This document shows positions 19,817 through 39,783 of a stretch of DNA of 64,000 nucleotides, one piece after another; position 1 is the first letter of the stretch; each line of letters begins with the position of its first letter. Source of the DNA: Mytilus edulis (Eukaryota); the NCBI RefSeq assembly GCF_963676685.1, contig NC_092354.1:21576001-21640000 (forward strand), written 5' to 3'. The translations under genes and the position numbers were made by a program. The notes under the pieces are model-generated. The model ran no database searches and was not told where the DNA came from. It saw only the letters and a list, made by a program, of their open reading frames with translations.

Positions 19817-22800
19817 GTAAGTCTCTTGTTTTTGTTTTTATTTGAAAATGTGCCATTTATAGAAGGAATTGTGTATGTATAAAAATATATGTGGCTGTGG
19901 TCGGAATCGTGGACGTGTACATATGTACGTCTGCAATCGTTGCGTCATAAGGTAATACAGATAAATGAAGAAAGTTCAAAAAGTACAGTTCAAGATCATT
20001 CAAGATCATCACATGTATTAGTAGTTATTAAAGGTACCAGGATTATAATTTAATACACCAGACGCGCGTTTCGTCTACATAAGACTCATCAGTGACGCTC
20101 AGATCAAAATAGATGTAAAACCAAACAAGTACAAATTTGAAAAGCATCGAGGATCCAAAATTCCCCAAAAAATATGCCAAAACGGCTAAGGTTATCTATT
20201 CCTGTGATAAGAAAATCCTTAGTTTTTCGAAAAATTCAAAGTTTTGTTTACAGGAAATTTATAGAATAAACGATATTTATGCCAACACCGAAGTGTGGCC
20301 TACTGGGCTGGTGATACCCTTTGGGACCGAACAGTAGTGTAAATAGTTATCAAAGGTACCAGGATTATAATTTAATACGCCAGAGGCGCGTTTCGTCTAC
20401 ATAAGACTCATCAGTGCAGATTTGACTTGAACATAAAGACTCTATTTAAATTTCAGCAATATGAAAATGTGGTTTGACTTAATCGAGGACGAGGATCTAA
20501 TTCCCTTTTTTGCACTTCATGTACATATACAGTGAAACCTGACTAAACCGAACCCTTTCGGGACTTGAGATTTTGTTCGGTTTTGGCAGGTATTCGGTTT
20601 GATCAGGTTCACAATGCATAAAATGTGATATCGATTGGTCTTCAGAACAAGTTTGGATTAGACAGGTTTCCGGTTTATTCAGGGTTCGGTTTTATCAGGT
20701 TTCACTGTAGTTACTTATAAAAACATTCCAAGAGCACACAGATTATGTAAAAAATGTGAAGTCCTAGATGATGAATTTCATTTCTTTTTGTATTGTGACA
20801 TTAACATATCTTTGCGTTCTAATCTTTTTGCTTATCTAAAAGACTATGTACCATTTTTCAACATCTTGATGCATTCAATAAACTTAAACACATTCTAAAC
20901 CCCATTCCTGAACTTGTTTGTCATATTTGAGTCTTCATTAAACAGTCTTTAGAACTGAGGGGGTCAGACCCGTGTCAGGCAAGGTTATGATGGTGTTTTT
21001 GATATATAAACATTTATAATTGAACTCTTAATGTTCTATTATTCTATATATTGTATTATATTGAATTTCATTGTATTGCATTGTATTACATTGTATTACA
21101 TTGTAGTGTATAAAATTATTGTTTGATTGTATTGCTTGACCCTTATGATCCCTTATGGGTGTAATTTTGCAATAAAGATTATTATAAAACGTTATTGATC
21201 ATACATTATCTAAATCTACTGAAAACCTAGGGGTTCCTTTATTTTTGTATTCTTCAATTTTTCAGACAATGTTCCTCTATTCATTGTGTATTTACCCATT
21301 ATAGTCTTCTGACTATTTTTTTGCATCCAATTATTCTCTATTCTTTATTGTTTCTGCCAACTTTTCTGTACCCCCCCACCACCTTTATTCTGCACTTTTA
21401 CTGAGCCAATTGGCCGTTTCAGAATCTAAAGCATCATGGGTAATTCCATCCAATTATTCTCTATTCTTTATTGTTTCTGCCAACTTTTCCGTACCTCCCC
21501 CCTTTATTCTGCACTTTTACTGAGCCAATTTACCGTTTCAGAATCTAAAGCATCATGGGTAATTTCATAGTTCGTACCCAAAATGAAAATAACGTCACGT
21601 CATTGGTTAAATTTCCATTGTTTATGACATTTTTAACCAATCAGGACGTTTTGGTGTACATTTTTGAAAATATTACCCAGGATGCATTAGATTCTGAAAA
21701 GGCGAATTGTTTATTATGTAAACCTCACCCAGACTCACAGTTATGTTGAAATTGTATGGTGCCATGAAGAAAAACATGAATTGCATTTCCTATACAGAGT
21801 TTGATTATTGTATAGTTTTACTTTCATATATTTTATTCATTTAGAATAAATAGAACACTATCCTAAAAAGGTGTACCTGTTCTATTGTCAACATTCTATA
21901 ACAAGATATGGATTCTATAATATAAAAGAACTATGAAAGAATTTACTTTCGTGTACTTTCATTTTTAAAATGTTTACGTACAGTATAAAGACAAAGTATT
22001 GCCATTTAAGAATTGAATGCTTCTTTTTGTAAATTTATTGGGGTGTAAAAGCGTTGACCGAAGTACATTTTGTATGAAGCGCGGCAGCAATGCAACTGCT
22101 TACGGAATAACACGTGATGTGCAGTTAGCCAATCAGAATAAAATATTATAATGAAACATACATCTAATGTAATCATGAACAAATATTACATCTTGTATTA
22201 AGAATTAGATATTTAATGAATAATATATGTTCTTTATTTAATTTAAGTTATTTTGAATAATTGCTTATTTTTGTACAACCTTCTGTGGTAACTAATTCGC
22301 GTATTCGTAGAACGAGAACACATTAAAATGGTAGCCTCTTGAAGGTGAGCGACTCGGATGAGAGGTGGAAATTTGGACTGCCACTGACAAATAAGGGTAC
22401 TTTTGATAAGGACCGATTTTTTTTCTTGTAATTGGCTACCTGTGGTTCCCGTAAAATATATTTCAATGATCTTTACGCACAAGAGAGTATGCTAATCATC
22501 TTATATGAGGTATCGAATTGCACGATCTCATTTCAAACGAAATGGTTGCATATTTTCACATCCCGCATAGCAAAACGCTGGCCAATTTAGTTGTATCCTT
22601 TATACGGCGAAACCGGTAACAATTTTGCCATCCCAATTTGCTTTCAGGGAAGTTTTATTATTCATTCATAGAGCATTTCCATTGTAGATTGTGTTGTTTT
22701 CCTTTTTTTGAACAACTTATCCGCAGCTGGTAAGTTTTAATGAATTTAATTATATTTGGCAACATTCTTGTTTACTGTATATTTAATTGAATTTGGCAAC

Positions 22801-25800
22801 TTTCTTATTTATTGTATATATAGTTAGTCGTATTTTGCAACATCCTTGTTAACTGTATAGTAAGTTGTATCTGGCAAATTCTTGTCTACTATATACTAGT
22901 AGTTAGTTGTATTTGGTAATTATTGTTCACTGTATAGTTACTTGTATTTAGCAATTTTCTTGTTTACTGTATAGCTAGTTGTATTGTATTCCGTGTATTG
23001 ATAGTTGCTGTCTTGAATACTGTCCAGTTCGTCACTGTCTTTATACAGTACAAAGGTAGTCGCAGGCCCGTAGCCAGGAATTTCTTTCAAAGAGGGGGGG
23101 GGGGTGTATTTGGACTCATGAACTCGACTTTAACAGTCACAATTTGAACAGAACGTTGACTTTAACAGTGCTTATTTGGTTGCAAAGGGGGGGGGTCGTC
23201 CGAACTCCTCGACCCCCCTGGTTACGGGTATGCAGTCTTAGATAGTTAGTTGCTTTGTGATATTGTTAGTTGATATATTTCCTACAGTATAGTAAGTTAC
23301 TGTATACTGTTGAATTTCTGAATCTCAAACACATTTAAATACTTTTATTTATTTTCGCAATGATTCGCAATATCTCGTTTTGTTTTCAAGCTGAGATTTT
23401 TTAACAAACTGTCATTTCAACAGCAGAACACGTACAATTTTCTAGTGATATTCCGGAGCCTGTATTTTAGTGGTTGTCGTTTGTTTATGTGTTACTTATT
23501 TGTTTTTCGTTCATTTTTTATTAAGATAAGGCCGTTAGTGTTCTCGTTTGAATTGTTTTACATTGTCATATCGTGGCCTTTTATAGCTGACTATGCGGTA
23601 TGGGTTTTGCTCATTCTTGAAGGCCGTACGGGTGACCTAAAGTTGTAAATGTCTGTGTCATTTTGATCTTTTGTGGACAGTTGTCTCATTGGCAATCATA
23701 CCACATCTTCTTTTTTATATATATATTTTACTCTAGGGAAACAAAATATTAAGATAAAAGTATGTTCATCTGTAAGCAGAAAATAAAATATTTGTTCATG
23801 GTATTATAAACGCTTCAAACTTGATTAAATCTCTATTTCAGACGGTGGGTTAACATGTTTGAGTTGTAAGCACATGGTACAGCCCGGCGATTGTTTCAAA
23901 CTGACGACATGTGGCGACCACGAGGTAAACATTCAGATAAACTGTGACTTTTAGACTAAGAACAGCAAACAAACGCTCTTATTTTGCTATTTGTGTTTAT
24001 GCTGTCATGAATGGATAGCGCATATCCGTTTTTTTCTTCTATGTTAAACGGTGTTTTGGTTTAGAATGAGAAATAAAATATCGGTGATAATGAAGAAAAC
24101 TGTTTCATATACTGTAAACCAACTTATTTTCGCGGATACTTTATTTCGCGTTTTACCCTTTCTTGACCACTTCGCGGCTATTTAATTTCGCGATTTTCTG
24201 ATTACTTGATGAAGTTTAATAAGGAAAGATCCATTTTTTAACAAATTCGCGAAAATAAATCGCTCGCGAAAATAAGTTGGTTTACAGTAAATGGATTGCT
24301 GAGCAGTTACTAAAAATCAGAGTAATTACAAAGCATTTAGAAAAGGTTAAAAATGCGCTTTGTGAACATTCATAAGTATCTATCTGAAAATAAGAAGTGA
24401 TTACCAATGAAACAACTGTCAATCAAACAACGTGGTACCTAACACCTTCACTAAAATTAATTTGGCTCGTTTAATTTTCTTAAAATTTTGACAAAGTATT
24501 TACTTTGACCCTTTGACAAAAATGTAAACAAAAATCCAAAAAATTGAACCAACCGTTTAATCAGAAAAATTACACTGGTTATATAGCAGTTTGACAATTA
24601 CTTATTTTGATCATTGGAAAGCTGAATATTCCCTTAAGAACACAGACGACGTGCACAAAGTTGACGGCAACTGTAAAATGCGCTTTTTAAATAGTTTTAT
24701 ACAACCGTCATTTTAATATTATTGAAAAACGTCATTAAAACGTTCTGCTGATTTATCTCCCTGTAGTGTTAGGTACCACCTTAAGGTCTTAATTTGTTCA
24801 ATACAATTTTATTTTATCTTACTTTATGAAAAACAAAAAATAACTGACATGCACCTACGACAAACGGCATTACAGGCTCCTGTCTCAAGCCAGATACATG
24901 CAAAATGTTAGCGAGCGTTGTTGATGACAATTGTAATTGAATTTTATGACAATGTGAAGGAAAAATGTGTGCTGTACTTATTGCTTTTGGGGAAGGTTAA
25001 CTTTCTGGTAGTAAGACCCGTCACGGCCAGGCTGGGAAACTGAATAGGCAAATGCTCACATTAAATCTGTACCGATACAGTGTGTTAAATGTCTTCCTAT
25101 TTACACCATAACCAATTGTGATGCTTCTACTAAAGGGGTGATAAATAGAACATGCATACATACCCCCCCCCCCCCCCCCAAAAAAAAAAAGAAAAAGAAA
25201 AAAAAGAGCAGTAGATACGAGCATCGCATGTTTAAAGATAGTCGGACGTATTTATCGAAGGAAAATTCTTTCAATATAATATACGTATCACAAAAACAAG
25301 AAAGCGCGTATACGTAACGTTTAATCACATAACAAATGCAGCCTCGGGATTCGATTTAAGGATTTCACCATACTTATATTATTTCAAAAATGATTCATTT
25401 CAGCAATGTTACTTGAGACGTTATGTGACGTCCTCCGGTACAACATGGTATGATGTTGGATGTTTAGATAATACGGTACGTATAGACTGGTACTAACCTT
25501 CTTTTTTTTTGGTTTTCTGGTACAATATTATAAGTTACAGGAACACACCCGTGATATCTCGGGTCCCTGACTGAATTAAAGTATATAACTATGCGTAAGC
25601 CTTATTTTGGTATTGGTATTGTCATCTGATAAAGTCATGCCGATTATAAGATACACAGTTTTTCTGCTTTCAAATCTTTCTGTTTGAACCCGTCGACCTG
25701 GAACTTATCAATTATTGGTAATATTAATTATTTGGAAAACAAAAGGTCCTGGAATGGAGTATTTAATCAACAGCATTGACCTATATAAGTTGTAAATAAA

Positions 25801-28800
25801 GTTGAATTCTGTGATTCGCTGTTTAACGTCATGCCCGCTAACAAATACAATGATTGAATTTAATAGTGTCAGTCCTGTGATTATGACCCGTGTATATAGC
25901 AAAATTCATAAATACACCGTTTGGTGGTGCGCGCAGATAAGGTAATAGGTAACAGGTGAATATACTATTGGTATCGGTATCGGATTCGACCCGGAACTTG
26001 TTAATTATTGGCAATATTAATGATGTGGAAAACAAAAGGGTCTGGAATGGTGTAATTTTTTAATCTACACCATTGTCCTATATTAGCTATATATAAAGTT
26101 GAATTCTTTGATTTGTCGTTTTTATACCCGATGACGGCTGACACATTGGACCTCGTTATTATAGATATGGTTCGTTACTGACCCCCTACGGACTCGTAGG
26201 GGGTCACAACGTGACGGCGTTAAACAAATCACAATGTGAAAATGTACCCGCGGTGCGATAATGTACAATGTTGGATGTTTACAATACGTAAAGACTTATA
26301 GTCGTCTTTTTTTTTTTATCGTGGATGTTTTGAAGTGTTGTGTGGTATAAAAGCATGATATGCTGTTGGATGTTTAGATAACACAGTGCGTATAGACTGG
26401 TACCCATCTTTTTTTCTAAAATGATTTTTAGTGTTGTACAGGTACAATATTATATGATGCATAAATATCTTAAATTGCATTCTGAATTGGTTCATTGGTA
26501 TCGGCTAACTTTTCTTGTTTTAAATACAGAAGTTTGACTGGTTTAAATAATGTACATATGAGCTAAGAAATATCTATTGATAAATTGTCAAAATTTGGTT
26601 AAAATTCAGAAATGTGCAGCTATATCCGGGCTACCAAAGACTGTTCGTCCAACAACAGTAGAAAATAGTAGAACACTTCCTCCATCGATCATAGGCAAAC
26701 GTCAAAACGAGGTTAATATGACACAATTGCCCATTATGGCCAGACACACATTGCCGCCATCTATAATAGGAAAGCGTCAAGATGCTGACGGGGAAACAAC
26801 GTTGTGTGAGCACTGCTGTAATAGTAGTACTATATGTAACACCGGGGGATATTGTGGATCTTTGTGTAAGTGAATTAAGAAACTGTATACATGTACCAGT
26901 CATACTCCAGAAATTAGAAAAAAACAGACCAAACACGAGTCATAATTAAGCATTTCGCGGTCATTTTCATATCCGAGACTGCAATTGGCATGATGACAGC
27001 GTTTTGATAAATTGTATGGCCTTATTATCATTTAGTTCGTGATTTGAAATGTTTCCAGTCATGAACTACACACTCTTTTTTATACGTTTTGCTTTATATC
27101 TATTGTACCGTTATATCAGGTTACTTGAAGTAGGCCGATTCCAATGTTGTTGTTTTTCTGACAGCGTGTCTTGTTTGCACTCATTTATTGTTGTTATTTT
27201 CTTTGACAACTTGTCAATGACATTAGTCACAGCTATTCATGTTTACATTATCATAAACAACTTTTTGTTGTTTACATTAACAGATTTAAACATAGCTGTG
27301 TTTATAAAATTGTCAAAGAGACAACAACCCGACCAAAGAGCAGAAAACTGCCGAATGCCAACAATGGGTCTTCAATAGAGCGAGAAAATTCCGCTCCCAA
27401 AGGCGTGCGTCAGATGGCCCGTAAACAAAAAAAATATGTACTAGTTTAGTGATAATGGGACGTCATACTTAACTCCGAAATATATAATAGAAACTAACAT
27501 TAAAAATCATACTAGACTGAACCTATATGATTACATCTACACTTCTTGTTTACACTACTAGTAACAGCTTTTCGGTTTTACAGCTTTCCATTTTACTTGA
27601 ACAGCTTTTCGTGTTTTTATTATCAGTCTTTTATGATAACATTTCATATCTATATTAACAGCTTTCCATGTAAACATTAATAGCTTTTAAAAATCCCGAT
27701 CATAAAAGGATGCATGCATTAAAAGTTTTTCATATTTAGGGTAACACTTTTACATGCCTGCATTACTAACTTTTCATGACGTTAATAGCTTTTTGTGTGT
27801 TCCTTAACAACTTTTCATGTTTTCATTAACAGCTTTTCATGTTTACATTAACAGCTTTGAGCAATCCTGGTCCGATATGTTACAGTTGTAAAGAAGCACA
27901 GACCGCTGACAGTTGTGACCAGATTGTTCAATGTGGCGAAGACGAGGTCTGTGCTTTAGATAGAATTTTAAATGTAACACGTCTTCTGATTGGCTGAAAG
28001 CGTTTTGTCTATCAGCTCAGAGACACAATTATGTCATGTGAACACGAAGTCATCAACGTTTTTATCATTATTTACTCCTTTTCAGAAATAAATCATAGGA
28101 CTTAAAGGAATATTTTTAATAGTTATTCTGTCTATTTGAAATAACGTAAAAAATGTGGCGCACACGTTTAAATAACCCATTACGCGCGTTATTCAGCGTG
28201 TACCACATTTTTTATGTTATTTCTTGATAATTTAATTTTGGATGTAACGCATCTTTTGATTGGCTGATGTTGTTTTGTTTATCAGCTCATAGATATAATT
28301 TAGTCATGTGAGCGTGACGTCACATCATCAACATTTTTTAAATGAATGAATGAATGATTTTATTCTCATAAACTAGTTCATAGCTACAGAGAAAATAACA
28401 GTTCATATTTAATACGTATTTTGTTTCGCATGTGTGAAAATAAATAACATTATAATATTATTAAAGTTCTTCTAACCAGGAGAACAGACTTTCAATGATA
28501 TGTATCTTATAAATCTACACAATTTTCTAGTTCTTCAACATTTTCAGATGAGAATACATTTCTAAATTTAATAATCTTAGCATTTTGTTTACAATAATGT
28601 GGTAAATATTTTTCTCTTTCAATGTTAAAAAAATTGCATGACAAAATGTAGTGAAATTCATCAGCAATATCTCGTGAGCTGCAGAGATGACAAGACCTTT
28701 CCGATCTCGAGATAGTTTGCCACCTTCCCGTCCCCACTGGCATCTAAATTTACACAAAGTACATAAAAAATTAAAAGGCAAAATCGATAAATACTTTTCA

Positions 28801-31800
28801 AATTTAAATTCAGTCTTGAAAATTCTATAACATTAACTTTTTGAGGATTGCTGTAAATCTGCACACCACTCTTGTCGAAATTGGTCTTTAAGCATTTGCT
28901 CAATACTTAATTTCATCCATTTTTTGTTTAAAAAATCTTGGCAATGCCATACATTTGACATGCCACATTCATCAAATATTTTCTCAATACATAACATCTA
29001 TTTATTTCCAATACCACAATTGTTATAGTTAATGTATAATAATTTATAAAGTATACGTGATAATTTATCTTCATTCGTATTATCAAGAAGGTAACACAAA
29101 AAGTTGACCATTCGTAGTTTAGCATATAGAGAAATGAGGTATCTCCCAAGTTCTCCATAAATCATAAAATTTGGAGTCGAGCTTTTAAGTTTTAGAATGT
29201 GTCTACAGAATTTCAAATGCACTCTCTCAAGTATATAAAATTTTTCGTATTCCCCAGCCCCGTATAGAAGAATAGTACAACAGCTTTACTAAAATTTATG
29301 ATAAAAGGGATGATTTTTCATTTCCTATCGTTAATTATCCGTTTTTAGATGGTGACGTTCCCTTGTCACCATCTTACGGTGTTTATATATCTCAACTTGT
29401 ACGATTCGCTCGTGTATGTAACAATGTTTTAGATTTTAACGAGAGAAATTTATGTATTACTGAAAAATTATTACATCAGGGTTTTCGATATCACAAACTA
29501 GTCAAAACATTTACTAAATTTTATCATCGGTATAAAGACATCATTCGTAAATATAGCTCAACATGCAGACTTCTAATACGTTCAGGTATTTCACATCCAA
29601 TTTTTTATGGTAATATTCTTTATAAAGCACAAAGGTGTCAGTATTCACCTCAGAAACTTACAAAACCTTTGAATAGACTTATTAAGAAGGGATATAATTA
29701 CGATACTGTTGTCAAGTCATTAAAGATTGCATATTTTGGCTTTAATATTGAGTCATTGATAAGGTTTTTGCATCGGAACTAAACACATTTATTCTAAAAA
29801 CAGTTGTTGGCATGACACGGGTTATGTTCTTCTCATATATGTTATGATGGTATGATACTAAACCCCTAACGGGAAGGATTGTGCCTGATGTTCATATGAT
29901 GAAATCATAATCTTTCAGTCAGTTTAATTGAAGTCTGGAGCTGGCATGTCAGTTAACTGCTAGTAGTCTGTTGTTATTTATGTATTATTGTCATTTTGTT
30001 TATTTTCTTTGGTTACATCTTCTGACATCAGACTCGGATTTCTCTTGAACTGAATTTTAATGTGCGTATTGTTATGCGTTTACTTTACTACATTGGTTAG
30101 AGGTATAGGGGGAGGGTTGAGATCTCACAAAAATGTTTAACCCCGCCGCATTTTTGCGCCTGTCCCAAGTCAGGAGCCTCTGGCCTTTGTTAGTCTTGTA
30201 TTATTTTAATTTTAGTTTCTTGTGTACAATTTGGAAATTAGTATGGCGTTCATTATCACTGGACTAGTATATATTTGTTTAAGGGCCAGCTGAAGGACGC
30301 CTCCGGGTGCGGGAATTTCTCGCTACATTGAAGACCTGTTGGTGACCCTCTGCTGTTGTTTTTTATTTGGTCGGGTTGTTGTCTCTTTGACACATTCCCC
30401 ATTTCCATTCTCAATTTTATTATCAAACATATCTAGTTGGCATTCGATCGATAAGTGATTCAATCTGCTCTTCTTGATAACACTATACATAGCTTTAGTT
30501 GCTTGGTCTCGTAAATATTTCCTAGTTTCGAAAAAAGATGCATTTCTAAGAAAATAACGCGTTTTCATGGTTTACTCCGGTTTAAAATGGAAGTTAGTAT
30601 TACATTATAAGAAATAACTGTAATATTTCATCTGTCTATTCGAAATAACATTAAAAAAAATGTGGCGCACACGTTTAAATAACCCACTACGTGGGTTATT
30701 CAGTGGGCAACTCATTTTTGATGCTATTTCTTCATAGATAGAACAAATATTACAGTTATTCCTTAAATAGCTACATTTGTTTGTAATTTGCCAATGTTTG
30801 TAGAGTAAGACTTTGGTTGGTTTGCTTGCTTTGTTTATATAAACGTTTTCAAAAAGCATTGTTATCAAGATTGACATCTGCGAACAATATAGATAGGCAT
30901 AGTTAAACCTGTATATATCATATCTAAATTTGATTTGGGTAGAGGTAGCCTTTAAGGAGGTAGACCTAGGTTAAGGAAGATAACTCTTTAAATCAGTCAA
31001 CCGTTTGTAAAAGTCAAGTTCACCAATGTATTTTAAGCATTTACCTGAAACAGATTGAAAATAATCTATGTAACCTAGAAGCTTAGAATATGTTTTTGAA
31101 AATGGTTGACACAAACGTACTGATGATTTTAAGAGTTATTTCCCTTAACCTAGGTCTACCACCTTAAGTGTAGTGAGCATTTATCTCTTATCAGCTTAAT
31201 TGGCGAAGCTTTTCATGAGCGTAATTTTCTTGTTAAAACTGTTGTCATAGTTTGTCTAGTTGGACTGGATGCGGGGATGTTTACCTACAGCACAAACTTG
31301 GTGGATATACCAGCAGTGGTGTCAAAAGAGTTTGCACCGTGAAAACTATTGAATATATGTCACCTGCGAATTTTCAATATTAAATACTAGTAAACACCGT
31401 CTACAAAGCACATATGTGTACTAATAGTAAATTATTTTGACTTCTAATTCGATGTCATGTTTGTTCGTTTGTTTCAGAAATGTTTTATTGGACAGGTATT
31501 TAATCGACTATCTCAGGAAAAAAGATGGACACATGGGTGTAAGAGTAATAAAACGGTTTGTACAATCTATAATAATGACAAGGATTCTGTTTTTCAATAT
31601 TTTACCGCTGTAATATTAGTATAAACATTGATGTGAAATTAACAATATTAATCTTCCATGGTATAAACAAACGGTAAGTTGCGGATATTCTATACAAAGG
31701 GATACTGGTCACAGTGTTTTAGCAAAAATAACAGGTATGTGAGTTGACGATTTCTCGAATTTTTATGATTTTTTTTGCATGAACCGATGGTATACGTCCG

Positions 31801-34800
31801 AGAAGACAAAAGTTAAGAGTGACGTCATGACTAAATTTTATACCGAAATCGTATTCTTTTATTTTTAATGTCCACCATAAACAGCTAAAATGAATTCGGT
31901 TACATCAGTAATCATTATATCCAATGACGGAAATTTTAATGGCAATAAAATATTATTTTGAAAGAAATCTTTTTTTTCAATCGGATTACAATACAGATCA
32001 CTTGCCCATGCTTTGCCTGTATGATCTGATGTAGCATTCCGTTTTTACTTTCTGTTCTGGTAATTAAATTTAAGGTGGTACCTAACACTACAGGGAGATA
32101 ACTCTGTAAAATCAACTGAACGTTTTAATTACGTTGCAGACAACCTAGATGTTAACAAAATAGATGAACTTTCAGTTAGACTGGGAGACATTGATCCCAA
32201 AAATACAAACATTGTAACAATTAATGATATAGTTGAAAATTGTAATAGTATTATTAAGAATGCTGCTGAATGTGCTGATATGTTGATTAAAACTACTAGC
32301 AATGTCAAGAAACATGGTTGTAAAAAATATAATCATTGTAAAAAATATTTTAACAGTGAATGTTATACAAAACGCAAAGCTTATCGTAAAGCAAAAAAAT
32401 ACCATTATAGAGTACGTTCTGTTGTTAATCACAATGATTTGGTACGTAAAAGCAAGGAATATAAGAATATACTGAAAAAACAATTTTGTGAATTTCAAAA
32501 GGCGTTTATAGGTAAACTCAGAGGTCTGCGTACCTCAGATCCTAAATCATATTGGTCACTACTAAATAAAGGTTGTGAAAAAGGTAAAGCTACTCAGCAA
32601 AAAGTAGCTATGAATGTATTTTTTGATCATTTTAAAAATTTAAACAATGTTGTAAATGATATTGATATTGTTTTACCAGATAATGTTACAGAATATAATA
32701 CTGTTATTAATGAGCCTATAAGTGAAAAAGATGTGTTAGATGCTATAAAAACATTAAAGAACGATAAAGCTTGTAGTAATGATATGATATTAAATGAATT
32801 TTTGAAACATGGAGCTGTCAAATTATTGCCTGTTTATGTCAAGATTTTTAATATTATTTTTGAAAGTGGTATTGTACCAGATTCTTGGTCTCAAGGTTTT
32901 ATATGTCCAATATACAAAAGCAAAGGTGACCCCGCAAGTGCGGACAATTATAGAGGTATCACTATACTTAGTTGTTATGGAAAACTATTTACATGTATTC
33001 TTAATAACAGATTATTCAATTACCTTGAATGTTTGGGTTTATTATGTGAAGAGCAAGCTGGTTTTCGGAAAGGCTATGGTACTGTTGACCATATTTTTAA
33101 CTTAAAATGTCTTATTGATATGTATTTATTTAGAAGGAAAAAACTGTACTGTGCTTTTGTAGATTATCGAAAAGCTTTTGATTCTGTAAACAGGGTATTA
33201 TTATGGCAAAAACTGTTACGTAATGGTATTGACGGTAAAATGCTTATTATTGTACAAAACTTGTATAAAAATGCTAAGTCTTGTGTTAGATCTGGTAGCA
33301 ACTTTTCAGAATTTTTTGCCTCCAATGTAGGAGTTAGACAAGGTGAGAATCTCTCACCTTTATTGTTCTCAATTTTTCTAAATGATTTGACAGATTTTTT
33401 GTCACATGCTTATAATGGTCTCTCTGATATATGTAATATGTCTCATTTATTATTTGATAATGATGATATTGAAGTTTTCTTTAAATTGTATTTGTTATTA
33501 TATGCTGATGATACTGTTATATTTGCTGAGTCTGCTACTGAATTACAATCTGCATTAAATGCCATGTACTTGTATTGTGAAACATGGAAGCTTAGTGTTA
33601 ATGTAGCCAAAACCAATATTGTGATATTTTCAAAAAACAGACAGGGTGAAAACACTCAATTTTTCTATAACAATGAACCAATAGCTGTGTTAGATGATTT
33701 TCTATATTTGGGTACAGTTTTTTCTAGAAAAGGTACTTTTCACAATAATAAGGCTAGACTTGTACAACAAGCTAGAAAAGCTATGTTCTATGTTTTATGT
33801 AAAGCGAGAAAGCTTAGTTTGCCAATAGATATTTTGTTACAATTATTTGATGCAATGGTGGCACCTATTTTGTTATATGGTGCAGAAGTATGGGGTTATG
33901 AAAATAATGACATTATTGAGTCTTTGCATTTAGAATTTTGCAAGTATATATTAAAGGTTAAAAAATGTACGCCAAATTATATTGTATATGGCGAACTTGG
34001 TAGAACACCCATGTCTATATGTATTAAAGCTAGAATGGTTGGTTTTTGGCAGCGAATTTTAAATGGCAAGAAAGAGAAAATATCTCGAACATTGTATGAT
34101 ATGTTGCATAAACTGAATGAAGGTGATGTGTACCATTCTAAATGGTTATTATATATAAAGGATATTTTAATTGAATGTGGTTATGGAAATTATTGGTATG
34201 ACCAATCTGTATTAAGAAATATAAACCTGTCTAAAAATGTAAAGCAAGTTCTTCATGAAAAATTTGTAGAAGGTTGGAAATTACAAGTATATGACTCACC
34301 GAAGTGTATAAATTACCGTATTTATAAATCTGATTTTAAATTTGAGAATTATCTCACTGTACTTCCACCTGATTTAATGTATAATCTTACTAAGTTTAGA
34401 TGCGGTAGCCACAAATTGCCAATTGAAGCTGGTAGATTTTTTAGTATCAATAGAGCTGAAAGAATTTGTGATCTTTGTAATAAGCAAGAACTGGGTGATG
34501 AATTTCATTATATATTTAATTGTAACTTTTTTACGCAAGAAAGACTAAAGTTTATACCTGATCATATATATAAAAACAAAAATACTGTAAGCTTGTCAAA
34601 TTTAATGAGTAGTCAAGATAAATATGTACTTGTTGGATTGGCAAAATTTTGCAAAATTGTTATGTCTGTATTTAAATGATAATATATGGATATTACTCTT
34701 TCATCTGCATACACCTACTTCATATGTATATATGTTAGTTCATGCATTACTGTTGTTTGTTAAATTTATTGTTTGTTAAATTCATTGTACTATTATGCCT

Positions 34801-37800
34801 CATGTGAGGCCTTTAGTGAAAATAAAAGTTTCAAGTTTCAAGTTTCAAGTTGCGTAGATAATGAAAGCTTCTCAGTGATGAGAATAAGTGTTTGTGAAAC
34901 TGCTATATAACTAGTGTATTTTTTCTGATAAAACGGTTGGTTCAAAATTTTTGAAATTTTTATATTTTTGTTAAAGGCTCAAAGTGAATACTTTGACAAA
35001 ATTTTAAGAAAATTAAACGAGCCAAATTAATTTTAGCGAAAGTGTTGGGTACCACCTTAAATGGAATATTACAGTTATTTACCTCGTAAAAAAATGAAAT
35101 ATCACACACATGATTTTTCGGTATTCAAATGCAGTTTCTTTTGATCTAGTTGTCTGCAAAGTTTCATAAAAACAGTGAGACTACACTTTTCATACTTTTT
35201 ACCTGAAAAAGGAATTGCACAATCCACGATATGAAAGATTCTAATGTTTGTTTACACAGCAAAGCTCATAAGATGTTTTAAGCTATGTTAGGTAAGACAA
35301 AGCAAACATTATAAAGTAATGCTAATTTTGGTTTTTACATCGAGGCTATTTTTAATTGTAGTGTGCATATACACAAGGGAAGAGAGACACAGACGATGGA
35401 AACAGTCAAATATGTGAGGAGTGTTGTGAGGATCACTTGTGTAATAATGTGTGTACAAACTTCGTGGACTGGAACGCCCCCTTTGTACCGACCACTTCAT
35501 CTTTGAAGACTGATGCGATAACTGCGATGTCTACCCTTGATATTATAAAAACAACGTTGCCGACGACAAAAACAACCACATTGCCGACGACAAAAACAAC
35601 TGCATTGCCGACGACTAAAACAATAATACCGACAACAAAAACAACAACCATGCCGACGACAGAAATACTAACAACTAAAACGCCGATGACAAAAACAACA
35701 ACACTGCTGACGACGAAAAAAGAAACAACACTGCCGACGACGAAAAAAAGAACAACCATGCCGACGACAACGACAACCACGTTGCCAACAACCACGCTAG
35801 GTAGGACTTACAGTGAAACCTGTTTAAACCGAATCTCTTCGGGATTAATTTGTTCAATTTGTGCGGATGTTCGGTTTTGTCAGGTTCAAAACGCATACAA
35901 TTTGATATGACGATGCTTAAAACATGGTTGGTTTATACAAGTTTTCGGTTTATACATAATTGGTTTAGTCAAGTTACACTGTATAGACACAGTTTGATAC
36001 AATTAGTAAACGCTAATTCAGATGGGGGCGCAACAAACGCTAATTCGAATGGGGGCGCAACATACGAGTACCCCTCTATAACAATTAATAAAACTGTAAT
36101 TTATATGTTACGTTACAACCAATTAATTTGTAAAAATATAGTCAGGTAACTCTCATTTTCGGTAGCATTCCACAAAATCAAATCCTGGGATCGCACATGT
36201 CTCCTTCAACACCAGGAATGATACTAGGTGCTCAGGAACGATATGTATTTCCTGCTTTTTCACTCATCCAGGCAATTTTATTATTTAAACTATAAAAAAA
36301 AACACCAAAACAAACAAAAAAACTGCGATCACAAAAATCTTATTAATAAATCGTGCCGAAAATGTGAAAAGTATTGCACAGACGGTGTTGTTATAGTTAA
36401 ATGGGCCGGACAGTTGCCTATTATTGCTCACATCCACCTCATTTGAACGTTGATGGATATTTGTCTCATTGGCAATCGTACTATAATCCCTTAGTTTATT
36501 TACGCTAACCAACTTTCAAATGTTTAGGTTTAAGTGAAGAACATGAGAATGGTAAATCCAGAAAATGTTATTGTAAACCAACTTATTTTTGCGAATTCTT
36601 ATTATCGCGTTTAGCCCTTTCTAGCCAGCTTCACAGCGTCTTAATTTCGCGGTTTTCAAATTCACTTGATGTAGTTAGATAAGGAAAGATCCAAGGTTAA
36701 ATTTTCTCGATTTTTATTCGCGTTATTTTTTTCTACTCGCGAAAGTCGCGAAAATTAGTTGGTTAATCGTTGTTTGATTACATACACTGTAAAGTTGTAA
36801 TTATCTACCGTGATTAAATTATAGACCCTGCTGTCATGGTTAATTGTGATTTTGAGGCTGATCTTTGTAATTGGCACCAAGATAAAATGGATGATGGTGA
36901 CTGGAGAATTCACTCAGGTCCTACAGCTACGGATAAAACTGGACCGGATAGTGATCATACATTGGGCAGTGGTAAGATTAGCGACAACATTGCATCCTTT
37001 GAATATTTTAAATTGTCTATAGACTTTTGATGAGGTAAATATATTATAGACGGATCTGTTCAGATTATATTACTGAAGACGAAGTTTTCGATACTGACCG
37101 TCAATCTTTATAAATATAGAAAGTCTGAAACATTGAAAAATAGAAACAAAGCTTCAGATACTTGGAATACCCTTTGATTCACATGATCGTCATGACCAAT
37201 GAAAAAAAGAAGAATGCTACACAGTATTAATAATGTATTACATCATTTGCATATATTACCATCTTATATTAGTACTGTTGTGCAAATCTTTCCTTTACAC
37301 TTACATAATGTTTTCCTTATCTGAATAGCATTGTTCATTCCAACCCTGGTACCTTTGATAACTATTTACACTACTGGGTCGATGCCACTCCTGGTGGACG
37401 TTTCGTCCCCGTGGGTATCACCAGCCCAGTAGTTAGCACTTCGGTGTTGACGTGAATATCAATTATATGGGCATTTTTATAAATTTCCTCTTTACAAAAC
37501 TACGAGTTTTTCGAAAAACTAAAGATTTTCTTATCCCAGGCATAGATTACTTTAACGTTTTGGGCACTACTTTTTTGAATTTCGGGTCCTCAATGCTCTT
37601 CAACTTTGTACTTGTTTGGCTTTATAACTATTTAGATCTGAGCTTCACCGATTAGTATTATGTAGACGAAACGCGCGTCTGTCGTATAACATTATAATAT
37701 CCGGTTTATATTAAATTTCTGACTTGTCCTTCATGCATACTTCTATTTATACCTACCTGTCTGAAACGTCGAAAAAAATGATTATCAGGTTGTCAATTAG

Positions 37801-39783
37801 TGTAAGCTCTCAGAGTTTACCATTTAAGCACTACAATCTTTTCTTTTTCTATGGGAAAAAGACATTATTCATACTTAAATGTTTGTCCCTAAAATTTTAT
37901 TAACTGTGAATTTGCATTCAGATATCGCAGATCAAATTATATTCGTTCATAGTGTGTTAATTTTCGTTTTTTGATTGCGTTAAGCCTGCCAATTGATATT
38001 TTATCGTGTGTTTTACTATGTTGTGATGTTATGCTATTGTTTCAGAAAAAGGTAGAAGGTTTGGTACCATTAAAACGTTTAATCCCGCTGCAAATGTTTG
38101 CACCTGTCCTAAGTCAGGAATCTTCTGTACAAATGTTGTCAGTTGTTTATGTAATTTATACGTGTTTCTCGTTTCTCGTTTTTTATATAGATTAGACCCT
38201 TGGTTTTCCCGTTTGAATGTTTTTCACTAGTAATTTTGAGGCCCTTTATAGCTTTTTGTTCGGTGTGAGCCAAGGCTCCGTGTTGAAGGCCGTAGATTGA
38301 CCTATAATGGTTTACGTTTATAAATTGTTATTTTCATGGAGAGTTGTCTCATTGGCACTCACACAACATCTTCCTATATCTATTATATAGCCGAATATTA
38401 ATATCATTTACTAAATGAATATATCATTTTATTTTTATTGATAATTTTTCCCTCTTTATTAGAACAAGGACACTATTTATACATAGAAGCATCGGATATG
38501 AATTATCAGAACTTTGTTCGATTGCTTTCCGATGATATTGCATGGCCACAGAGAACATGTTTAACGTTCTGGTATCATATGTATGGACATTTCATAGCAT
38601 CTTTAAGTGTTTATTTAAAGGTAAGTAAAACCAGTCAGAATATAGAACATAAGCGTATATGAAACTTTAATCTCTCTATAGAACACTTAAAATTGCAAAG
38701 GATAGCAAATGCCTACATGCACAGTTGATCGAACTATATCACGCATACAATGGCAAAAAAAAACCTCTATGTACATGCACCGTCGATTGCACTATAGAAC
38801 ACGTTGTAAAAAATAGCATATGCGCAAGGAACCACAATCATACTGTAGAACACATAAAAAGCAAAATAGGGAGCGTACATACGTAAAGAACTGTCGATCC
38901 TACTACAGAGCATAAAAATCAAAAACAGAAGCGTATTCGTACAGAAACCGTCAATCGCATTTAAAAAGAAGCATTTGATTTGATTACAGTAGCCATTAAT
39001 CGCGTCACGAAGCATATACAAGTCAAAAAGGCAGCGTATACGGATAGCATTACAAGGTACTGACAAAAAAGGGGAAACAAATGCAAATACATACAGAATC
39101 TGTCGATTGCTCTACAGAACACAGGTAGCATATGCGTACCATAACCCCACTATGGAGCACATCAACAATTAAATTGTAGCATATATGAGTACAGGGATTG
39201 AAGTCATAAAACTTTGCTCAGTGTTTGGAGCACAAAAGTCATGCTCCAAACATGAAATACAGCTTTTTGATTGGTTGATTTTCGAGTACGAGTACAAAAA
39301 TCTGACTCGAAAGTTTTATGACCGCAAGGCCTGGAATCGATACGTCGTAATGATTTTTAAAAACATCTCCACTGGCCACCTTTTTAGATAGTGGTAAAAT
39401 AAAACAATAAAGAAAAACAGACAAAATTTATAAAAACACAAAACAAACATAAATGGAGATTGAATTTGGTTGATCTATTATCGGAATGAACTCGTATTCT
39501 TTGACCTCAATACATTTGGTTGAATAAAACCATTGGCTGACTAGGTTTTTATTTTTTTTGTTTATATTATTTCAAAGTTTACAAATTGATATTAAAGGAT
39601 AGTGATGGTAATTTACAAAAATTATGGAGTCAGTCTGAAAACCATGGCAACAACTGGTTACCAGCTAAAATAAATTTACCAGATACTTCAGGACAAATAG
39701 TAATAGAGGGGTACAGGGGAGCAGATATACATGGCGATATAGCAATAGACGATATTGTACTGGTTCGTAATTGTGGTCCTTAA
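19798..39783 (+). CDS. Secreted protein: signal peptide + 2x Ly6/uPAR-like 12-Cys domains + Thr-rich mucin stalk + MAM domain (11 coding exons, ~523 aa)
   Basis: Exons 19798-19816, 22688-22729, 23842-23924, 25404-25475, 26610-26865, 27855-27946, 31478-31555, 35362-35800, 36825-36971, 38463-38620, 39598-39783. All junctions are GT-AG with matching phases; total 1572 nt with no internal stop. Confidence 0.85.
20022..20416 (-). mobile_element. Retrozyme-like / Penelope terminal-repeat element with two hammerheads 322 nt apart
   Basis: ~73-bp direct repeats at 20022-20094 and 20344-20416, each containing the hammerhead; decayed family members at ~3790-4015, ~37345-37700 and ~56560-57060. Confidence 0.8.
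20055..20098 (-). ncRNA. Minimal type I hammerhead ribozyme
   Basis: Minus strand GCGUCA CUGAUGA GUCU-UAUGU-AGAC GAAA CGCGCG UC UGGUGU: intact core with a palindromic minimal stem III. Confidence 0.85.
20530..20707. mobile_element. 177-bp MITE copy
   Basis: Same TIR and TA TSD. Confidence 0.9.
20712..21185 (+). mobile_element. LINE 3' fragment (…LCKKCEVLDDEFHFFLYC…, 3' UTR, AATAAA + (att)n tail)
   Basis: C-terminal Cys/His motif as in the other LINEs; inverted homolog at 2210-2690. Confidence 0.75.
21528..21708. mobile_element. MITE with ~38-bp TIR; its left junction is tandemly duplicated (21324-21445)
   Basis: aatt…tttcagaatctaaagcatcatgggtaat / attacccaggatgcattagattctgaaa…aatt. Confidence 0.7.
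22688..22729 (+). CDS. Exon 2 (signal peptide hydrophobic core YCVVFLFLNNLSAA)
   Basis: ttccattgtag acceptor, G|gtaagt donor, phase 1-1. Confidence 0.7.
22755..22985. repeat. ~39-bp intronic minisatellite
   Basis: tttggcaacattcttgtttactgtata units, 6 copies. Confidence 0.8.
23842..23924 (+). CDS. Exon 3, LU-like domain 1 start (DGGLTCLSCKHMVQPGDCFKLTTCGDHE)
   Basis: tatttcag acceptor, GAG|gtaaac donor; LxCxxC three-finger N-terminal pattern. Confidence 0.85.
24112..24287. mobile_element. TA-flanked MITE (TIR CTGTAAACCAACTTATTTTCGCG); relatives at ~36571-36770 and ~59270-59450
   Basis: 23-bp TIRs, TA TSD. Confidence 0.85.
25404..25475 (+). CDS. Exon 4 (QCYLRRYVTSSGTTWYDVGCLDNT)
   Basis: catttcag acceptor, ACG|gtacgt donor, phase 0-0; C...GC pattern. 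Confidence 0.85.
25541..26206. mobile_element. Interspersed element, possibly a non-autonomous Helitron/Helentron; partial copy at ~10178-10400
   Basis: Shared AACACACCCGTGATATC… start; internal duplication; GC hairpin at 26179-26206. Confidence 0.5.
26610..26865 (+). CDS. Exon 5, LU-like domain 1 end with 2x TLPPSIIGKRQ and C-x2-CC-x5-CN
   Basis: Within ORF 26577-26873; attcag acceptor, T|gtaagt donor; CC...CN motif typical of Ly6/uPAR domains. Confidence 0.9.
27855..27946 (+). CDS. Exon 6, LU-like domain 2 start (SLSNPGPICYSCKEAQTADSCDQIVQCGEDE)
   Basis: taacag acceptor, GAG|gtctgt donor; paralogous to exon 3 with the same phases. Confidence 0.85.
29288..30418 (+). mobile_element. 5'-truncated Penelope-like retroelement (RT C-terminus/thumb, no C-terminal GIY-YIG; Naiad/Chlamys-like)
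   Basis: TKIYDKRDDFSFPIVNYPFLDGDVPLSPSYGVYISQLVRFARVC… open to TAA at 29782; 3' part recurs at ~56690-56945 (+) and ~27308-27520 (-). Confidence 0.8.
29833..29899 (+). promoter_or_regulatory. SECIS element (form 2) in the 3' UTR of the Penelope-like element
   Basis: tcatat…ATGAT GGTATGATACT AAA CCC-ctaac-GGG a AGGATTGTGCC TGAT…atatga: AUGA/GA core, 11-bp helix II, apical AAA, mini-stem, helix I. Confidence 0.8.
30956..31163. mobile_element. TTAA-flanked MITE (relative at ~48950-49145)
   Basis: ttaa|GGAGGTAGACCTAGGTTAAGG…CCTTAACCTAGGTCTACCACC|ttaa. Confidence 0.8.
31478..31555 (+). CDS. Exon 7 (KCFIGQVFNRLSQEKRWTHGCKSNKT)
   Basis: gtttcag acceptor, ACG|gtttgt donor; paralogous to exon 4. 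Confidence 0.85.
32138..34848 (+). mobile_element. 5'-truncated young LINE (CR1/L2-type non-LTR retrotransposon)
   Basis: Uninterrupted RT frame from ~32139; AATAAA followed by a (gtttcaa)n tail; 5-bp duplication gttgc at 32133-37 and 34849-53. Confidence 0.95.
32280..34679 (+). CDS. LINE ORF2 reverse transcriptase (endonuclease lost by 5' truncation)
   Basis: NYRGI, QAGFR, DYRKAFDSV, GVRQG..LSP, YADD motifs; C-terminal ERIC-x2-C…DEFH…C. Confidence 0.95.
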   Translation: MLIKTTSNVKKHGCKKYNHCKKYFNSECYTKRKAYRKAKKYHYRVRSVVNHNDLVRKSKEYKNILKKQFCEFQKAFIGKLRGLRTSDPKSYWSLLNKGCEKGKATQQKVAMNVFFDHFKNLNNVVNDIDIVLPDNVTEYNTVINEPISEKDVLDAIKTLKNDKACSNDMILNEFLKHGAVKLLPVYVKIFNIIFESGIVPDSWSQGFICPIYKSKGDPASADNYRGITILSCYGKLFTCILNNRLFNYLECLGLLCEEQAGFRKGYGTVDHIFNLKCLIDMYLFRRKKLYCAFVDYRKAFDSVNRVLLWQKLLRNGIDGKMLIIVQNLYKNAKSCVRSGSNFSEFFASNVGVRQGENLSPLLFSIFLNDLTDFLSHAYNGLSDICNMSHLLFDNDDIEVFFKLYLLLYADDTVIFAESATELQSALNAMYLYCETWKLSVNVAKTNIVIFSKNRQGENTQFFYNNEPIAVLDDFLYLGTVFSRKGTFHNNKARLVQQARKAMFYVLCKARKLSLPIDILLQLFDAMVAPILLYGAEVWGYENNDIIESLHLEFCKYILKVKKCTPNYIVYGELGRTPMSICIKARMVGFWQRILNGKKEKISRTLYDMLHKLNEGDVYHSKWLLYIKDILIECGYGNYWYDQSVLRNINLSKNVKQVLHEKFVEGWKLQVYDSPKCINYRIYKSDFKFENYLTVLPPDLMYNLTKFRCGSHKLPIEAGRFFSINRAERICDLCNKQELGDEFHYIFNCNFFTQERLKFIPDHIYKNKNTVSLSNLMSSQDKYVLVGLAKFCKIVMSVFK
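35362..35800 (+). CDS. Exon 8, LU-like domain 2 end (CAYTQGKRD...CEECCEDHLCNNVC) plus mucin-like (TTLPTTKT)n stalk
   Basis: ttgtag acceptor, G|gtagga donor; ~24-nt Thr-rich repeats in ORF 35437-35910. Confidence 0.9.
35811..35981. mobile_element. Diverged relative of the 177-bp MITE, 10 nt downstream of the exon 8 donor
   Basis: ta|CAGTGAAACCTG…AAGTTACACTG|ta. Confidence 0.75.
36825..36971 (+). CDS. Exon 9, MAM domain N-terminal part (CDFEADLCNW...TGPDSDHTLG)
   Basis: MAM signature CDFE-x3-C-x-W and TGP-x2-DHT; G|gtaaga donor. Confidence 0.92.
38463..38620 (+). CDS. Exon 10, MAM domain middle (GHYLYIEAS...CLTFWYHMYG)
   Basis: MAM signature motifs; AAG|gtaagt donor. Confidence 0.92.
39598..39783 (+). 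CDS. Exon 11, MAM domain C-terminal part (…GNNW…GDIAIDDI…CGP*)
   Basis: GDIAIDDI MAM motif; stop TAA at 39781-39783. Confidence 0.9.
   Translation, partial: DSDGNLQKLWSQSENHGNNWLPAKINLPDTSGQIVIEGYRGADIHGDIAIDDIVLVRNCGP

Follow-up and report, generated by a model that had tools for sequence, protein, structure and literature searches.

An old repeat of a Gly-Lys-Arg motif in a mussel LU-like domain copies the hallmark of a large gene family

Few extracellular binding modules of animals are as widespread as the LU (three-finger) domain, which, to our knowledge, has been treated as a single-chain unit. Excision of a segment from between disulfide-linked chains is known from insulin, with its C-peptide, and from horseshoe-crab coagulogen, with its peptide C. 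Here we describe a 64,000-nucleotide stretch of the Mytilus edulis genome (positions 21,576,001 to 21,640,000 of contig NC_092354.1, in our numbering G000:C11:21576001-21640000; hereafter the window), in which one exon, whose product is part of the RefSeq protein XP_071138950.1, encodes the peptide TLPPSIIGKRQ twice within the probable third finger of an LU-like domain. The two copies go back to an old internal duplication of the hallmark that marks finger 3 in a large mussel LU family (hydrophobic-hydrophobic-Gly-Lys/Arg-Arg), and purifying selection at the protein level has maintained both from a time before the Mytilus species diverged; in these conclusions we have high confidence.

Four described systems bear on this arrangement. 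Molluscan proteins that combine LU and MAM domains, listed in a survey of invertebrate genomes (PMC13719153), have the same architecture, are secreted and come from molluscs; a term search of that survey found no convertase, furin or amidation, no finger-3 G-K/R-R and no internal duplication. The sodefrin and precursor-like factors of newts (PMC4776240) are likewise three-finger-family precursors from which a small peptide is cut at Lys-Arg, but the peptide arises from a frameshifted C-terminal tail, is not amidated, occurs in one genus and is not accompanied by a family-wide motif. The mussel myticalins, defensins, mytilins and myticins (PMC5577615) belong to the same genus, and their precursors, made in non-neuronal secretory tissues, carry a conserved Lys-Arg, often after Gly, with an anionic, fast-evolving extension behind it; unlike the present protein, they are small and linear or compact, and the site stands before a C-terminal propeptide rather than in a folded LU finger. 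Finally, alpha-cobratoxin (PMC12390062) is a three-finger protein with an essential, uncleaved cluster of basic residues (Arg33/Lys35/Arg36) at a finger tip, although on loop II rather than loop III and without a G-[KR]-R of strict final Arg, the relationship being one of superfamily fold only.

Two conserved copies in one LU-like domain

The two copies lie on the + strand at 26673-26705 and 26748-26780, separated by a 14-residue spacer. On recount the encoded peptides are identical exactly as first listed, with 6 of 11 codons and 7 bases unlike (CTT/TTG, CCT/CCG, TCG/TCT, ATC/ATA, GGC/GGA, AAA/AAG) and every change synonymous; between copy 1 and copy 2, all 7 changes thus fall on the 8.8 synonymous sites and none on the 24.2 non-synonymous sites. 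The repeat is confirmed as real and far beyond chance. The 14 codons 5' of each copy share just 9 of 42 bases, i.e., they have no detectable similarity, which bears out the statement in the original prediction that the flanking residues are not conserved. Because the synonymous sites of the two copies are near saturation, the duplication is old.

Three other causes were considered and rejected. Chance does not account for the peptide identity (7/7 changes synonymous): after 7 random substitutions the peptide was intact in 3.5e-5 of 200,000 trials. Gene conversion would make the two DNA copies alike, whereas at synonymous sites they have diverged almost to saturation. Derivation of the repeat from a close paralogue is contradicted by the single-copy state of the exon in the 1.37-Gb genome, where the next match has E = 4.7e-4. 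In these searches exons were used singly, and the database models P0001 and P0003 (the M. trossulus orthologue) stood in for the joined protein.

The spacer (14 codons, 26706-26747) contains a conserved N-glycosylation sequon, NMT, at 26715-26723, which the original prediction had not mentioned. It had counted a peptide of 22 residues, and 22 residues indeed separate the first Lys-Arg from the second Gly, with the sequon inside them.

The host protein of 492-517 residues consists of a signal-like exon, two consecutive LU-like domains (LU1 and LU2), a Thr-rich mucin stretch and a MAM domain. The cysteines of LU1 are spaced C-x2-C-x8-C-x5-C-x5-C-x17-C-x5-C-x64-C-x2-CC-x5-CN-x4-C, and LU2 repeats this frame with a third loop of 16 residues, so that both show the N-terminal C-x2-C, the 8-10 cysteines and the C-terminal CC-x4-5-CN of LU domains. 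When three curated LU profiles (Pfam PF00021, PF00087 and PF16975) were tested against their gathering scores, LU2 of P0003 scored below threshold (UPAR_LY6 20.4 bits vs 24.8, E 7.5e-4; Toxin_TOLIP 17.4 vs 21.2), and the Pfam LU profiles matched neither LU1 nor its repeat-bearing exon alone. Since these scores fall below threshold, we call the domain LU-like. The MAM profile (PF00629) was matched by P0003 over its full length with 136.6 bits against a gathering score of 26.4. An AlphaFold2 model of P0003, made with 7 orthologues, has a mean predicted local distance difference test score of 37, with 20-25 over the loop, and its LU part is unusable. An ESM Atlas model of residues 20-160 gave template-modelling scores of 0.56-0.59 to molluscan UPAR/Ly6 clusters and 0.47 to PSCA, which serves as a lead only, and a PDB sequence search with the exon-family profile returned no match. 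The cysteine pattern and the weak profile and atlas matches agree with the Ly6/uPAR-like domain that was originally proposed.

In the canonical LU disulfide map, as in CD59, the seventh and eighth cysteines pair and bound finger 3. By analogy, the repeat between Cys7 and Cys8 of LU1 would occupy finger 3, which fits the earlier placement of the motif in a loop; exposure of that loop would follow from this topology only. The loop counts 64 residues in LU1 vs about 20 in typical relatives.

M. galloprovincialis, M. trossulus, M. coruscus and M. californianus have all retained both copies, and the motif has changed at one place only, where copy 1 of the last two species has Val for Ile. Across the five Mytilus sequences that cover the full loop, 1 of 22 motif positions is variable vs 18 of 42 other loop positions (Fisher p = 0.0013). 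This constancy, together with the 7/7 synonymous changes between the copies, upholds the purifying selection that had been suspected from the window alone. A more distant homologue, 57% identical (P0002, P0006 and P0007, from metagenome and Logan data), reads T-M-PPSII-G-R-R and T-H-PPSVI-G-R-R, with a spacer that is otherwise unrelated yet again holds an N-x-T sequon. As the exon is single-copy in M. edulis, this homologue comes from another taxon and the duplication is older than the split. The original prediction depended on orthologues having kept GKR, and G-K/R-R is present in every orthologue found. A metagenome scan with the DNA of the 57%-identical homologue found nothing, and protein searches with the exon-family alignment and with a single-domain paralogue gave almost no matches beyond Mytilus.

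A hallmark shared by a large mussel LU family

The weaker genome matches to the exon are homologous C-terminal LU exons, with the same intron position before Cys7 and a hydrophobic-G-K-R soon after. To avoid motif bias we therefore built a 22-residue profile (A5) that begins at Cys8, entirely behind the motif, and runs to the last cysteine. It had 88 genome matches, 70 of which were read; among these were 62 distinct loops that had Cys7 and Cys8 in the same open frame. G[KR]R occurs in the Cys7-Cys8 interval in 56 of the 62, compared with 2.1 on average, and 9 at most, in shuffled loops. Lys and Arg alternate freely in the middle position (34 GKR, 22 GRR) while the final residue is always Arg (0 GKK, 0 GRK), and the residue before the Gly is F, I, L or V in 54/56. 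The distance from Cys7 to the Gly has a median of 9 residues and is 5-11 in 54/56 loops. From the Arg to Cys8 the median is 8 residues but the distance reaches 35, with every long insertion falling after the motif; many of these insertions are acidic from the start (DYDEG, GDDDG, NDDDE, ENEM, DIVETD). Pro is absent from the two positions after the motif Arg (P1', P2') in all 56 loops.

G[KR]R is thus a feature of the family, as conserved as the cysteines, and not an invention of this gene. The original prediction had treated GKR as a cassette peculiar to the gene, a view that does not survive its near-invariance in 56/62 paralogous loops, most of which have a single site and would be unable to release a peptide. 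Copy 2 (26748-26780), 9 residues before Cys8, aligns with the family motif at its canonical distance from that cysteine, and copy 1 (26673-26705), 26 residues after Cys7, is the addition. The duplicated unit consists of the family hallmark plus seven gene-specific upstream residues, T-x-PPS-[IV]-I. The finger-3 hallmark is previously undescribed. When run against the whole genome, Pfam UPAR_LY6 hit only N-terminal exons, at E > 0.1, and did not sample finger 3.

Family members form tandem arrays on contigs C10 and C11. Near-identical G[KR]R LU genes follow one another at C10:52.84-53.12 Mb and C11:55.78-56.12 Mb (L031-L035, L042-L047). In the C10 array, GKR is followed by an insertion of 30 residues, and ahead of Cys8 stands a conserved [VI]-R-S-x-G-D-T, perhaps what is left of a second motif copy. 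Many short members (L039-L099) carry G-H-H or H-x-H 3-5 residues past G[KR]R, in the finger-3 return strand, a possible metal- or pH-sensitive feature that is absent from the window gene.

Possible cleavage or binding at the finger-3 motif

Tentatively, and at somewhat less than an even chance, we regard G-[KR]-R as a signal for processing by a subtilisin-like proprotein convertase, slightly the likeliest mechanism judging from the sequence pattern. The reasons are the strict final Arg with a free middle Lys/Arg, the hydrophobic residue before the invariant Gly, the lack of Pro after the site, the variable and often acidic insertions directly behind it, and the behaviour of LU2, which has its own GKR and whose orthologues in two species read WKR, keeping the Lys-Arg where Gly has become Trp. 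The long asymmetric loops do not fit a pure beta-turn role. In mussel antimicrobial-peptide precursors, propeptides follow dibasic sites in the same way as the acidic insertions follow the motif here, and convertase cleavage, then carboxypeptidase and PAM, has been predicted for the Mytilus precursors (PMC5577615). The M. edulis genome encodes many convertase P-domain and Cu-monooxygenase (PHM-type) loci. About 12 convertase P-domain exon matches, of at least 35 in the genome, lie at C3:0.09-0.56 Mb, which suggests an expanded convertase gene cluster in M. edulis.

On this convertase reading, G-[KR]-R would be cut in the secretory pathway. A single cut in an ordinary member would nick finger 3 into two chains tied by the disulfides of the domain, and after trimming by a carboxypeptidase the exposed Gly could be converted by PAM to a C-terminal amide. 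Cutting at both sites of the window gene would remove a connecting peptide of 22 residues, probably N-glycosylated and ending ..LPPSII(-amide), in the manner of C-peptide. As in C-peptide and coagulogen, two basic sites flank a variable segment inside a disulfide-bonded domain and the remaining chains would stay joined; in contrast to them, the folds are unrelated, cleavage is here predicted, and most LU members have a single site, giving a nick rather than an excision. The excised piece would more likely be a by-product, or its removal a step in LU maturation, than a hormone.

Several observations weigh against processing at this site. (i) Cleavage and amidation are predicted only, in every family member. 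(ii) We know of no LU domain with internal convertase processing, and our literature searches turned up none. (iii) The sites are without the P4 Arg that constitutive furin-type enzymes prefer. (iv) In short members the motif stands mid-loop, 9 and 8 residues from the cysteines, as expected of a basic Gly beta-turn. (v) The conserved sequon points to a spacer retained in the mature glycoprotein. (vi) The RefSeq models of M. edulis and M. galloprovincialis begin at an internal Met, without the signal peptide and two cysteines. (vii) Two raw-read RNA runs that were searched, X21 and X24, had no reads on the exon.

Points (iv) and (v) would be natural if the motif were never cut. The basic Gly-Lys/Arg-Arg turn on the hydrophobic strand of finger 3 would then be an uncleaved tip, a docking epitope or fold-stabilising turn shared by the family, which the window gene would present twice, as two binding sites, on an enlarged glycosylated loop. 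This alternative is only slightly less likely than the convertase reading and explains the data almost as well. At the tip of loop II in alpha-cobratoxin, Gly34 stands between Arg33 and Lys35/Arg36. LU and three-finger proteins typically bind their partners by their finger tips, and Arg33, Lys35 and Arg36 are key receptor-binding residues of a toxin that is secreted intact (PMC12390062). The central position of the motif in the ~20-residue loops of short members resembles a hairpin turn, the sequon fits a loop that is retained, and the host, with its mucin and MAM parts, is of an adhesion type. Less easily reconciled with an uncleaved tip are the strictness of the final Arg beside a free middle residue; the fixed place of the motif near Cys7 despite up to 35 residues behind it, so that in such loops it is not the tip of a symmetric hairpin; and its constancy among 60 paralogues whose other loops differ, where binding epitopes usually diversify.

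A prohormone, as originally envisaged, is a subset of the convertase reading: convertase and PAM would release a bioactive pGlu...LPPSII-amide, or shorter ..PPSII-amides, acting through a receptor. This is possible but not the best-supported reading, and we consider it unlikely. One part of the prediction that stands is the pair of identical repeated dibasic units with a Gly amide donor (two ..SII-G-K-R units), kept in orthologues, as in neuropeptide precursors. Moreover, the seven residues before the Gly are the most conserved and the N-terminal part of the would-be peptide is weakly so, as in amidated neuropeptides, and sodefrin offers the precedent of a three-finger-family precursor from which a peptide pheromone is cut at Lys-Arg (PMC4776240). 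However, the GKR hallmark is single in more than 50 paralogues that could release nothing. The shorter products, such as (H)TLPPSII-amide, would need upstream monobasic sites that are not conserved, the residues there being R, K or M in Mytilus and F or V and W in the distant homologue. The would-be peptide bears the conserved sequon, and copy 1 would remain tethered to the domain through Cys7. The precursor, a large multidomain LU-LU-mucin-MAM glycoprotein of about 500 residues, is unlike any neuropeptide precursor, neither small and devoted to its peptide nor the owner of a unit-specific motif. Literature searches found no PPSII-type peptides and no relevant Mytilus Ly6/uPAR work.

The most far-reaching version, in which the whole mussel LU family would be convertase-cut, and possibly amidated, at the finger-3 tip while the window gene also frees a signalling 22-residue ..LPPSII-amide glycopeptide, is improbable; were it true, a recognition protein would double as a peptide precursor. 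As a cleavage site, the hallmark would represent a new mode of maturation for the LU fold and perhaps also a new source of mussel peptides; as a binding tip, it would imply a common partner for an expanded, tandemly arrayed gene family. The G[KR]R motif also provides a simple handle for annotating an LU family now missed by Pfam.

Transcript, gene start and neighbouring sequence

Contigs of X1 and X2, two runs recorded as probable RNA, span 26609-26865 with 2 differences from the window and join the exon through GT..AG introns, upstream to 25474/5 and downstream to 27855, showing that the exon is transcribed and spliced in M. edulis. Set beside the two raw runs with no reads, these contigs make expression tissue- or sample-specific. 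At window position 26706 the contigs of both runs read G for A (Asn to Asp straight after the first GKRQ), in agreement with the M. galloprovincialis protein and hence an allele or species difference rather than evidence of editing.

All coding exons that we delimited are on the + strand. The signal-peptide-like exon (22672-22729, placed by tblastn of P0003 and by its sequence) comprises 19 hydrophobic codons plus one base, ending at the donor G|GTAAG, and its homologous counterpart in the models of M. trossulus and M. coruscus is the N-terminus, which by eye has Met and a hydrophobic stretch. LU1 follows in three exons. Exon A (23842-23924) encodes finger 1 with Cys1-Cys4 (..LTCLSC..GDC..TTC..) and is linked by a GT..AG joint in X1/X2, 23922(+2) to 25402(+2); exon B (25404-25475, from RNA joints and translation) encodes finger 2 with Cys5-Cys6 in 24 codons; and exon C (26610-26865, from the RNA contigs) encodes Cys7, the 64-residue finger-3 loop, Cys8 and the C-x2-CC-x5-CN-x4-C end. 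LU2 exon A (27855-27946, ..ICYSC..) is tied to it by the RNA joint 26865 to 27855. LU2 exon B (31478-31555, ends approximate) was placed by tblastn of P0001, and tblastn also gave LU2 exon C (35362-35826, 3' end approximate), which has its GKR five residues after a cysteine and then Thr-rich mucin-like repeats, and three approximate MAM-domain exons at about 36824-36970, 38462-38620 and 39580-39783.

The start of the gene is less regular. In the window, 22669-22671 is TAG where the M. trossulus and M. coruscus models have Met, and a scan of the signal-like exon and the stretch just 5' of it (22543-22729) found no ATG. One older M. galloprovincialis model is labelled 'partial'. The explanation is either a 5' exon absent from the models or loss of the start in the M. 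edulis complex. The AG at 22670-22671 stands behind a pyrimidine tract and may be the acceptor of a further 5' exon; if that exon is real, the repeat-bearing exon would be the 'exon 5' of the original prediction. That numbering is plausible, although four coding exons are documented up to 26610-26865 and the ATG-bearing one would be additional.

Loss of the start would suggest that the gene is decaying in the M. edulis complex and that the repeat is a leftover with no present role. The TAG in place of ATG, the lack of an ATG within 130 bases upstream of the signal-like exon, the truncated RefSeq models and the two raw runs without reads would all accord with such a relic. We nevertheless consider it very unlikely: the ten coding exons further downstream all have open frames and are spliced in the RNA contigs; saturated synonymous divergence with zero replacements between the copies, and conservation in five species, indicate long-term selection; and in addition to the candidate acceptor, the X1 contig runs about 30 bases past the signal-like exon.

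The introns hold several other elements. An intact 799-codon open reading frame at 32280-34679 (+), in the intron between LU2 exons B and C, matches RVT_1 (E 2.9e-30) and belongs to a retroelement of the long interspersed nuclear element (LINE) type; its C-terminal part has degraded relatives at about 28500-29200, on the minus strand. Five intronic stretches (23497-23890, 24285-24875, 25467-26254, 27240-27436 and 28225-28421) have very deep coverage in all four runs, with many partial alignments and non-canonical joints, and behave as dispersed repeats transcribed elsewhere in the genome rather than as exons. At 25163-25205, also intronic, a run of 17 C is followed by about 26 A, and reads appear cut there.

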